Shown here one piece after another: positions 14,401-17,092 of a stretch of 38,423 nt of DNA. This DNA comes from Ministeria vibrans ATCC 50519 (taxonomy: Eukaryota > Protista > Filasterea): positions 1 through 38,423 of the forward strand of contig CALSCP010001042.1 of assembly GCA_943704425.1 (NCBI GenBank), in the 5' to 3' direction. Position 1 is the first letter of the stretch; each line of letters starts with the position of its first letter. The notes beneath the pieces are model-generated. The model worked only from the letters and a program-made list of their open reading frames with translations. It did not search any database and was not told the DNA's origin. A program made the translations under genes and the position numbers.

Positions 14401-17092
14401 CCAGTTTGTGTGTGTGTGTCCTGAAGGGATCACGGGAATGCACTGCGAGTCAGACATTGACGAGTGTGCTTCGTCACCCTGTGTCAATGGTGGCAACTGT
14501 ACACAAGGACTGAATGCCACGTCGCCCGCGCTCTTCCAATGTGTGTGTGCCGACGGCTTCTTTGGCGTGCAGTGTGAGGCGTCGACAGCAAAGGTGGGTG
14601 CCGCCAACAACGGTGGCGTCGCCGAGTCCTTGGTGCCTATCATCATTGGCGTTACCGCCGGTGTCGCGCTCTTGGTTCTTGTAGTGGTGCTGCTGCGTCG
14701 TCGCCGTCATCGTCGCCGTGGTAGTGATGGTCGTTCGGGCAACCCACACAAGCCGCTGATGCACGAGGAGCTGTCGATGGTTTCGCTGTCGGGCAGTCTT
14801 CGTGGTCGCCCAAGTGGAATGGAAGAGGAGGAGTCGAGCAACGTGCAGGACGGAGGCGCGCTCCAGTCAGCCTTGTTGGGCCACCAGCTAAGCTCGCGTC
14901 GTGGTCGACACCGTTCTTCACTGCAACTGGAGGTTCTTCAGAATCCCGCATTCGATCTTGACGAAGAGAGCACGGTGCTTCACTCGCACGAGTTGGGCAC
15001 GACCGAGTCGTCGCTCTTGACGGCACCCATTGACGAGCACGCGCGTCCTGAGTTTTACAACTGTGACGACTTGGTGACCCTGGAGACGTCGGGCCCGACT
15101 CTTGAAGCATTGCGTGTCGCGTATGGTGTACAGCGTGACGAGCGAGTGCGCAGTGTGTTTGATGTGTACGCCGAGGTGGCGAGCAGCGGAGGTCGTGGAA
15201 GGGCTGACTACGGTTCGGTCCGCAAGCCGCAACACATTCGACACGAGAGCAATGAGGACCCCATGGACGTGTACGCGAGTGTGCGCAAGGCAGATACCAA
15301 CACCGTCAGTGTTGCAGCGTATGCCAATGGGGGCGATCGAGGCTATGTGGAGCCGCAACAAGAGGGTGCAAAGAACGACAAGGACTATGCGAGGCTGGCC
15401 GAAGTCAGCAATGTGTACTCCAATGGACTGGGCGATACGACACACCAAATATACGCGAACGAAGAGAGACAGCAGGTGTATGCGAATGAGGAGGGGCAGC
15501 AGGTGTACGCGAACGAGTCAACAAGGCAGGTGTATGGAAATGTCTCAGTGGCAGACTACTCAAATGTGGAGGACCAATTGTACACAAATGGCAGCGCGAA
15601 TAGCAATCAGGTGTACTCAAATGCACAGCAGACGACGGTCTCGGAGACTTACGTGAACGGCGTCAATGTGGGAAATGACTCGTATGCAAACCAATGTCGG
15701 GATTGCGACTTGGGAGGCTACTCGAACCAGCTTGTGGTGCGCCAGGAGGGTGACGGTGGGGACGTGTACGATGATATTGCTATTGCGAGTGGTGGTTATC
15801 AGGTGGCGTACGAGGCGCCTGCCATGGAGCGTGGCGACGACTATGGCGACTATGCGCATGCGGTGAACCGTGGTAGTGCGTACGATGTGATCCAACAGCA
15901 GACACGACGCAAGTCGGGCATCTACATGACGGCTGGACTGGACTCGCGTCGGCGCTCGCTCGTAGCAGGTCCAGCTGACATATCGCTGAGCGGCGAGGGC
16001 ACAAACCACGATGGCGACAACGACTACGCTGTGGCACGACTGGCTGGCGAGAACGGTTTTGATGGCGACGACGACGTCACAACTGCAGTTGATGCGGCTC
16101 TCGCGCCGTTTAGCTACAACCGCGCATGGCTGACGTTTGTCGAAGAGATTGGCAGTGGCGAGTTTGGCACGGTGATACGCGGTGTGAGCTCGGAAGGGAA
16201 CACGCGCGAGCAGCACTGGCTTGCGATCAAGTCGCTCAAGGCGCAGCTCACGGACACCGCGTGCCAGACAGACTTTCGCGAGGAAGCGTGCCTCTTAGCA
16301 CAACTGGATCATCCGAACGTTGTGCGTCTGGTGGGCGTGTGCATGGAGCGCGCGCCCTGGCTGCTCATTACCGAGTACTGTGCATACGGTGACCTGCGCA
16401 GCTTTCTCCGCAAAATGGCGTCGCTGAGTCACCAGATCCGTCCGACTGCGTTGGATTTGCTTAACTTTGCACACAGCGTTGCCCTTGGCATGGAGTACCT
16501 TGCCAGCAAGAACCTTGTCCATCGAGATCTCGCAGCGCGAAACTGCCTTGTTGCTGCTGGTTCTGTTGTCAAGGTAAAGGAAAATTGATCGATGCGGGGA
16601 GAAGCACTTGTCCTACAAAATAACTACTAATGAGTTTGATTGTGTTAGGTGGCGGACTTTGGGCTGTCGCGTCAGTTGGCGGCCGAGGAAGACCACTATG
16701 TGACGCGGGCGCGAGGGAAGCTACCTATTCGCTGGCTTGCCCTCGAGACCCTTTTGTTTCTCAAGTTCTCGACCAAGTCGGATGTGTGGGCGTACGGTGT
16801 GCTCCTCTGGGAAATTTTTACATATGGTACGCTGCGACCGTACCGTGGCACGCCGGTACGCGAGCTACCTGCACTGCTCTCGAGCGGCAAGCGCCTGCCT
16901 CGCCCGCGCGACTGCCCGTCCGACGTGTTCACGCTCATGCTTGCCTGCTGGGAGTGGCATGCGGACGCCCGCCCGACCTTTGCACAGCTCAAGCACACGC
17001 TGCGTCGTCTCATGGAGGCCGAGATGTTCAAGGGAGTGGAGCTGCGCTTGGTGGCCGAGCAACTTGAGGCTCTCACGTCGTCTCAAGTGTAG
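8408..17092 (+). CDS. Receptor tyrosine kinase with C-type lectin, EGF-repeat and ZU5-like ectodomain and a tyrosine-rich juxtamembrane region; exons 8408-8560, [gap], 9562-9641, 9717-9786, 9919-10854, 10924-11893, 11959-16573 (with 8-N gap), 16649-17092
   Basis: Signal peptide MAWRLAVLLLVVSSA. CTLD motifs (CPxGW...SCY, WLG/WIG, QPD/EPN, WND..C). EGF/cbEGF repeats. TM LVPIIIGVTAGVALLVLVVVLL followed by RRRRHRRR. Kinase motifs GSGEFG, AIK, HRDLAARN, DFG, KLPIRW, SDVWAYGVLLWE. Splice junctions are frame-consistent; linkage of exon 1 across the gap is inferred. Confidence 0.9.
8629..9330. other. Assembly gap (702 N) inside the RTK gene, probably hiding most of the first C-type lectin domain
   Basis: Run of N. 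Exon 1 ends just after the CTLD start CPPGWTGWGSSCY and the next visible exon begins a different CTLD. Confidence 0.9.
9331..9506. repeat. (AAT)n microsatellite decaying into (AATATT)n, intronic in the RTK gene
   Basis: Directly visible; abuts the gap. Confidence 0.95.
12311..13075 (+). repeat. 339-bp coding tandem repeat (unit of three EGF domains), at least two near-identical copies, interrupted by an 8-N gap
   Basis: aacattgacgagtgctcgccgaa recurs 339 bp apart; 12563-12673 is identical to 12682-12792 on the other side of the gap. Confidence 0.9.

Follow-up and report, generated by a model that had tools for sequence, protein, structure and literature searches.

The adaptors LAT, NTAL/LAB, FRS2 and Shc carry about 2 to 5 Tyr-x-Asn (YxN) sites and are substrates of separate kinases. 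On receptors of unicellular relatives of animals, repeated SH2-docking motifs are already known in principle from two systems, RM2 and the YxxP repeats. The RM2 tail modules of the receptor tyrosine kinase RTKB2 of Monosiga brevicollis are repeated, disordered and phosphorylated by the receptor, and then bind a Src SH2 domain (PMC3584944), and transmembrane (TM) proteins of Salpingoeca rosetta with YxxP repeats are proposed partners of Crk (PMC5043372). Here we describe a stretch of 38,423 nucleotides from the filasterean Ministeria vibrans ATCC 50519 (contig CALSCP010001042.1), called the window below. It contains a gene for a receptor tyrosine kinase whose juxtamembrane (JM) region, between the membrane and the kinase domain, holds an array of 12 YxN motifs. 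With moderate confidence, we read the array as a multi-site phosphotyrosine docking strip in the disordered JM region of an apparently active C-lectin/EGF receptor tyrosine kinase. The same motif class recurs in the JM regions of other receptor kinases of this genome.

The YxN array and its recurrence across receptor kinases

The host gene encodes a tyrosine kinase domain with its key residues and a single TM helix between the ectodomain, made of C-type lectin and EGF-like domains, and the kinase. Its catalytic motifs are intact: GSGEFG, AIK, HRDLAARN and DFG are all present, so that nothing points to a dead enzyme. The TM helix is followed by RRRRHRRR, which places everything downstream in the cytoplasm. 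The JM region has the composition of a disordered chain, with a mean hydropathy of 0.411, below the charge-hydropathy boundary of 0.435, and the host kinase domain falls on the folded side of that boundary. The protein ends about 30 aa past the kinase domain, and hence there is no C-terminal docking tail.

In the translation of the stop-free open frame 12662..16588, the 12 YxN motifs lie within 136 aa (15320 to 15727, + strand), and Asn stands at +2 of 12 of the 14 tyrosines of this segment. The last eleven motifs are spaced 8 to 12 residues apart. The JM region as first delimited (472 aa with 28 Tyr and 29 Asn) was shuffled 100,000 times; the shuffles contained 1.7 YxN on average and 9 at most, short of the observed 12. 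In shuffles restricted to the 136-aa segment, which is rich in Asn (18/136), Tyr (14/136) and also Gln, YxN averaged 1.8 and never exceeded 8. Other arrangements of the two residues in the same region are NxY, found twice, YN, found once, and YxxN, which does not occur. The residue at -1 is Val, Ile or Leu at 7 of the 12 array sites, the one at +1 of YxN sites is mostly Gly, Ala or Ser, and +3 in the host array is Gly, Glu, Val, Ala or Gln and never Arg.

Part of the array has been duplicated in tandem. Tandem Repeats Finder detects a 27-bp period at 15452-15516 (2.4 copies, 81% match). In a codon-level comparison of all twelve units, units 3 to 6 share 55% flank identity outside the Tyr and Asn codons (52 to 71% between adjacent core units), whereas the figure for the remaining eight is 32% and the in-frame background is 28 ± 10%. 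Outside this four-unit core the Tyr and Asn codons alone are kept, and the synonymous codons TAT/TAC and AAT/AAC are mixed across the units. Because flank identity is high in the core and near background in the other eight units, the core appears to be the product of a fairly recent tandem duplication, while the other units appear to be old or independent, retaining Tyr and Asn only. These results agree with much of the original prediction, which had listed 12 YxN motifs at the same coordinates and in the same order and had proposed growth by 9-aa (27-bp) tandem units, a proposal that both the repeat search and the flank identities bear out for core units 3 to 6. It had also placed the array N-terminal to the kinase, and the array indeed lies between the TM helix (14630-14695) and the kinase domain (from about 16136), in a protein with no C-terminal tail.

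Is the array a peculiarity of this gene? The genome (29.7 Mb in 2860 contigs) encodes many tyrosine kinases in very long open frames. Fourteen paralogous kinase loci were taken, and the JM region, from the last TM helix to the kinase, could be delimited in twelve receptors including that of the host gene. These JM regions are 261 to 791 aa long, and where a C-lobe was found, the protein continues for no more than about 50 residues beyond it, except in L002 (353). A long JM region, presumably for docking, without a C-terminal tail appears to be the standard design of the receptor kinases of this organism. The twelve JM regions contain 24, 20, 15, 12 (host gene), 6, 5, 5, 4, 4, 3, 2 and 2 YxN motifs. 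Pooled, 102 of their 300 tyrosines (34%) have Asn at +2, compared with an Asn background of 4.5%; of the 156 tyrosines in the ectodomains of these receptors, 5 (3.2%) do, which is at background level. When Asn offsets from -6 to +6 were scanned around the pooled JM tyrosines, Asn was enriched 7.5-fold at +2 and was neutral or depleted elsewhere. The pooled consensus is A-[V/T/M/I]-Y-[G/A]-N-[R/G/A], with Val, Ile and Met enriched 2.3- to 3.0-fold at -1, Gly, Ala or Ser at +1 in 80 of 102 sites and Arg at +3 in 24. The idea that the array is special to the host gene is therefore not borne out, as YxN-rich JM regions occur genome-wide in receptor kinases.

A search of the genome with the host JM region, run to E ≤ 10, returned no match but itself, and the JM regions of the receptors are not alignable with one another. 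Three paralogues, L002, L015 and L011, resemble the host gene in having a long JM region, many [V/M/T]-Y-[G/A]-N sites and local tandem amplification. However, their repeat units and periods are unrelated to that of the host array: L002 has periods of 63, 117, 66 and 30 bp with units containing MYGNG, VYGNR and MYGNR, and L011 has a 66-bp unit with YANG and YAMM. Their median YxN spacing is 20 to 22 residues; that of the host gene, 11 residues, is the tightest of all, compared with 17 to 146 in the other receptors. YxN arrays have been amplified independently in several paralogues, from unrelated repeat units. That one short motif was amplified repeatedly and independently, in sequences that are otherwise unrelated, argues more strongly than anything else for selection on the motif itself.

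A genome-wide DNA pattern for three close YxN motifs gave 176 matches, versus 162 for the reversed control, with AT-rich simple repeats dominating; the matches listed outside such repeats were mostly JM regions of receptor kinases, including the host window, C945 and C1494. In L011 (contig C313, 2857-3231), the 66-bp unit is present in 4.8 copies, in which YxN (YANG) alternates with a PI3K-type YxxM motif (YAMM).

A candidate docking strip, its possible readers and rival explanations

How could such a strip work? We hypothesize that, once receptors are brought together, the tyrosines of the twelve [V/I/L]-Y-[A/S/G]-N sites would be phosphorylated by the kinase of the partner receptor, by Src-type cytoplasmic kinases or by both. 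Each phosphorylated site would then bind an SH2 domain selective for Asn at +2, and one receptor would thereby hold many copies of the reader, the spacing of 8 to 12 residues being about one SH2 footprint. The valency would have been raised when tandem copies of the 27-bp unit were added to an older set of diverged sites. The aliphatic residues at -1, both in the array and in the pooled sites, make the sites look like tyrosine-kinase substrates, since tyrosine kinases generally favour such residues at this position (PMC11136658). Val and Ile at -1 are favoured by both c-Src and the Grb2 SH2 domain, and pYxN is the consensus of the Grb2/Gads SH2 domains, for which Asn at +2 is the chief determinant (PMC6077704). 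Taken over the genome, the consensus [V/I/M/T]-Y-[G/A/S]-N has the look of a site that is phosphorylated by tyrosine kinases and recognized by a reader selective for Asn at +2. Such a strict Asn would be expected of an SH2 reader with Grb2-type specificity, and the reader need not be a Grb2 orthologue. As in a LAT-like scaffold, multiple YxN motifs are held in a disordered-type, membrane-tethered chain.

Candidate readers were sought in the genome. The SH2, SH3 and RasGEF searches were run exon by exon on the fragmented assembly of 2860 contigs, in which introns or contig ends interrupt several SH2 domains, so that an absence of Grb2 or SOS is not proven by them. There are at least 28 SH2 matches at about 24 loci, and an SH2 profile retrained on the genome's own SH2 domains recovered the same loci; two SH3 families gave 98 and 86 matches. 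Cross-referencing of coordinates and reading of the loci identified Src-like and other SH3-SH2-kinase genes, a Csk-like module and an Abl-like module. There are also a Crk-like SH2-SH3-SH3 and a Nck-like SH3-SH3-SH3-SH2 arrangement, and further phosphotyrosine modules are PLCgamma-like, RasGAP-like and SHP2-like (tandem SH2, C1725).

Three of these loci deserve a description of their own. A Vav-like gene, L021 (C209:16027-19040), has DH, C1, SH3 and SH2 domains and no C-terminal SH3. L020 (C335:74890-75757) is a kinase-less SH3-SH2 adaptor with an intron-split SH2 domain, and within 1.5 kb no C-terminal SH3 can be seen. Of the loci found, this one comes closest to a Grb2-like adaptor, and the N-terminal half of its SH2 domain, compared with PDB entries, scores alike against the SH2 domains of SHP2, Grb2 and Abl. 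L019 (C2463:5516-6187) consists of a Csk-like SH3 and half an SH2 domain, and neither the other SH2 half nor a kinase is visible between it and the following gene. This may reflect a broken gene or a misassembly. The paired-SH3 loci C519, C1260, C1313, C2235, C1622 and C1494 were considered as Grb2 and rejected, as there is no SH2-like sequence between their SH3 domains.

Several points weigh against the array being a docking strip. Gly, Ala or Ser at +1 is not the classical optimum of the Grb2 SH2 domain. No SH3-SH2-SH3 gene emerged when the 28 SH2 matches were set against the 98 + 86 SH3 matches and the candidate loci were read. A Grb2-type Trp is present in 0 of the 16 SH2 domains with a readable EF loop, at what we take to be position EF1 as in the structures of Grb2 and Src. 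Neither a word-based nor a HMMER search found an orthologue of the JM region in which conservation could be followed, and the gene model consists of open reading frames (ORFs) and one GT..AG intron, so that an undetected in-frame intron could cut the array. Finally, the -1 residue is Ala, Asp, Thr, Ser or Gly at 5 of the 12 array sites, and Ser is disfavoured at -1 according to a study of kinome specificity (PMC11136658).

A bolder form of the docking reading, which we put forward only tentatively and consider rather doubtful, is that independently amplified JM arrays of [V/I/M/T]-Y-[G/A/S]-N are the one dominant code for receptor tyrosine kinase output in this lineage, with a reader that is not a Grb2 orthologue. 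The reader would be either an SH2 domain that gained its selectivity for Asn at +2 in another way or a new kind of reader. If so, this would be an independent, receptor-fused version of LAT-style multivalent scaffolding, invented before animals.

The original prediction had favoured a LAT-like scaffold in the strict sense, in which a Grb2 orthologue binds the array and bridges it to SOS, leading to receptor condensates and switch-like activation of Ras. We regard this wiring as unlikely. It would fit the pYxN consensus and the preference of the Grb2 SH2 domain for Val or Ile at -1, both noted above, as well as the high valency of twelve sites. Choanoflagellates are also reported to have Grb2 homologues (PMC7260276), at least 19 RasGEF loci are present in the genome examined here, and the half-SH2 of the C335 adaptor scores against Grb2 about as it does against SHP2 and Abl. 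However, the residues at +1, the missing SH3-SH2-SH3 gene and the missing EF1 Trp count against it, and none of the RasGEF loci has a DH domain in gene range; only C905 also has a DH match, and this lies 16 kb away. C905, the best RasGEF locus, was rejected as SOS, because it shows REM and Cdc25 only, with no DH or PH domain in the larger ORFs. A canonical SOS was not found by the exon-wise search of the at least 19 loci. Hence, of the original docking-array proposal, the N-terminal position and the growth by duplication are well supported and the Grb2-SOS-condensate wiring is not: SH2, SH3 and RasGEF loci exist, but no SH3-SH2-SH3 gene, SH2 domain with an EF1 Trp or canonical SOS turned up, although their absence is not proven.

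The strip could instead recruit a negative regulator, either a Csk-type SH2 protein or a tandem-SH2 phosphatase, and the JM region would then be a brake like Cbp/PAG or a reset timer, acting on the host receptor and on nearby Src kinases. We consider this improbable. The Csk SH2 domain reportedly prefers pY-[T/A/S]-[K/R/Q/N]-[M/I/V/R] in the peptide library of Songyang (1994), and it is the fit of Gly, Ala or Ser at +1 with this motif that brings a brake into consideration; together with Arg at +3, the pooled +1 residues agree with it no less well than with the Grb2 preference. A Csk-like SH3-SH2 locus (C2463) and the SHP2-like tandem SH2 (C1725) are present in the genome. Yet Asn is just one of several residues in the reported motif at +2, which leaves the 7.5-fold enrichment of Asn alone unexplained, and Arg is never found at +3 in the host gene.

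We give similarly little credence to an explanation that dispenses with phosphorylation or with function, in which the segment is a Tyr/Asn/Gln-rich "sticker" for self-association or a neutral product of replication slippage. The recent 27-bp repeat of the core, the abundance of Asn, Tyr and Gln and the lack of homologues of the JM region would all suit it. But composition predicts just 1.8 YxN in the segment, and neither stickers nor slippage predict that Asn is enriched at +2 only and not at -2, +1 or +3. Moreover, 8 of the 12 sites lie in nonrepetitive DNA, where Tyr and Asn alone persist, the motif recurs in nonalignable JM regions of paralogues with different repeat units, and the tyrosines of the ectodomains show no such bias. 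Control in cis, with the tyrosines as pseudosubstrates or as a multi-site delay element acting on the kinase of the same receptor, in the manner of JM autoinhibition in Eph or Kit, and docking as a secondary role, is very improbable: JM tyrosines do control kinase activity in Eph receptors (cited in PMC10263333) and many substrate-like sites adjoin an apparently active kinase here, but about 135 residues separate the end of the array from the kinase domain, whereas known autoinhibitory JM segments are short and packed on the kinase, and the strict Asn at +2 would be unexplained.

The host gene, its surroundings and its relatives

The features of the host gene are collected in Table 1. The upstream ectodomain exons, whose introns and 5' end are provisional, gave Pfam matches to Lectin_C (E=1.8e-21 and 7e-28) and to EGF (down to E=7.5e-32), and an 8-N assembly gap (12674-12681) breaks the frame. 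In the continued ectodomain, about 170 aa before the membrane were assigned to no family. The JM region has no Pfam domain above the curated cut-off; the sub-threshold matches are Adeno_E3_CR2 across the TM helix and EloA-BP1 inside the array. The two Pfam half-matches to the kinase meet at profile position 143.

Table 1. Features of the host receptor tyrosine kinase gene in the window
Feature	Position	Strand	Basis
Upstream ectodomain exons, C-type lectin domains alternating with EGF repeats	9949..12673	+	Pfam, ORF list
Ectodomain continued, at least 11 EGF-like repeats	12683..14629	+	Pfam EGF E=5.9e-66, 11 stretches
Single TM helix, 22 residues, LVPIIIGVTAGVALLVLVVVLL, then RRRRHRRR	14630..14695	+	Hydropathy scan, translation
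JM region, 480 aa, 28 Tyr	14696..16135	+	Translation, Pfam, hydropathy
Three YxxV motifs (YAEV, YGSV, YASV), upstream zone	15167..15283	+	Motif listing
YxN motifs 1-6 (start positions)	YAN 15320, YSN 15416, YAN 15452, YAN 15479, YAN 15506, YGN 15533	+	Translation
YxN motifs 7-12 (start positions)	YSN 15557, YTN 15581, YSN 15614, YVN 15650, YAN 15683, YSN 15719	+	Translation
Core of four 27-bp (9-aa) tandem units	15443..15550	+	HQIYANEER, QQVYANEEG, QQVYANEST, RQVYGNVSV
Other motif classes (YDDI, YEAP, YDVI), downstream zone	15767..15892	+	Motif listing
Kinase exon, N-lobe and catalytic loop (GSGEFG, AIK, HRDLAARN)	16136..16573	+	Pfam PK_Tyr_Ser-Thr E=7.9e-42, profile 1-143
75-nt GT..AG intron, splitting the kinase between VVK and VADFG	16574..16648	+	Direct sequence reading
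Kinase exon, DFG, activation loop (one Tyr), C-lobe	16649..17092	+	Pfam PK_Tyr_Ser-Thr E=6.6e-38, profile 143-258

The JM region is zoned by the type of Tyr motif, with YxxV first, then the YxN array and then YDDI, YEAP and YDVI. The C-terminus, -SSQV (17078-17092), resembles a class I PDZ ligand. A block of about three EGF repeats (NIDECSPNPC...FECTC) is present twice in near-identical form at 12311-13075, on either side of the frame-shifting 8-N gap, which probably reflects either an error of assembly or duplication in the very recent past. The first lectin exon is immediately preceded by a low-complexity segment (8001-10000) that is AT-rich (GC 25%) and contains a 702-N gap. On the opposite strand, a 1626-aa open frame (18297-23177) encodes poly-Q runs and long acidic low-complexity stretches.

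Outside the genome, a word-based search with the JM region returned no homologue, and no real one was found when 1.84 billion representative proteins were searched exhaustively with HMMER; the sole match, P0106, a repeat-rich bacterial surface protein matched through composition, was rejected. The proteins of M. vibrans itself seem to be absent from the database searched. The kinase exons, searched separately, are 37 to 43% identical to their best matches, which are choanoflagellate and Capsaspora kinases. Ten LRR/FN3 receptor kinases of Capsaspora owczarzaki (P0045-P0105) carry JM tyrosines and end straight after the kinase, like the host gene. They differ in that their JM regions are only 91 to 174 aa long and contain 56 tyrosines and zero YxN. 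The placement of docking tyrosines in the JM region, without a tail, may therefore be a wider habit common to filastereans, as far as these ten kinases, a single subfamily, can tell, whereas the long YxN arrays appear to be particular to M. vibrans.

Comparison with known systems

Like LAT, NTAL/LAB, FRS2 and Shc, the host receptor would present several pY-x-N sites in a disordered, membrane-tethered chain, a design in which multivalency is the point. It differs from them in having 12 sites within 136 aa fused to the receptor, mostly Ala, Ser or Gly at +1 and a genome in which no Grb2 orthologue was found. With the RM2 modules it shares a premetazoan receptor tyrosine kinase and a repeated, disordered, Tyr-bearing module. 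The RM2 units are about 80 aa long, present in six copies, C-terminal to the kinase and bound by Src SH2 (PMC3584944). The host array has units of 8 to 12 aa N-terminal to the kinase, a different motif and no sequence similarity to RM2, and beyond its kinase domain the host protein has no RM2-like units of such a length. The YxxP-repeat proteins and the substrate domain of p130Cas are likewise arrays of a single class of SH2 motif, whose multiplicity is argued to boost weak binding (PMC5043372), and the YxxP-repeat membrane proteins, like the host receptor, come from unicellular holozoans. In these systems, however, the motif is YxxP, it is read by Crk, and the proteins are not kinases.

The novelty lies in the scale and the uniformity: a single class of motif makes up a third of the JM tyrosines across the receptor kinases of a genome and has been amplified several times independently, and in the host gene neighbouring sites are packed at intervals of about 10 residues. 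Provided that its sites are phosphorylated and read, the array would be well suited to testing how receptor signalling depends on valency, and the apparent lack of a Grb2 orthologue turns the identity of the reader into an answerable question on how the specificity of phosphotyrosine readers evolved before animals. In comparison with the known systems, the M. vibrans receptors are set apart by the motif class, position and density of their sites and, above all, by the uniformity of the motif across the genome, together with a presumed reader that need not be Grb2.

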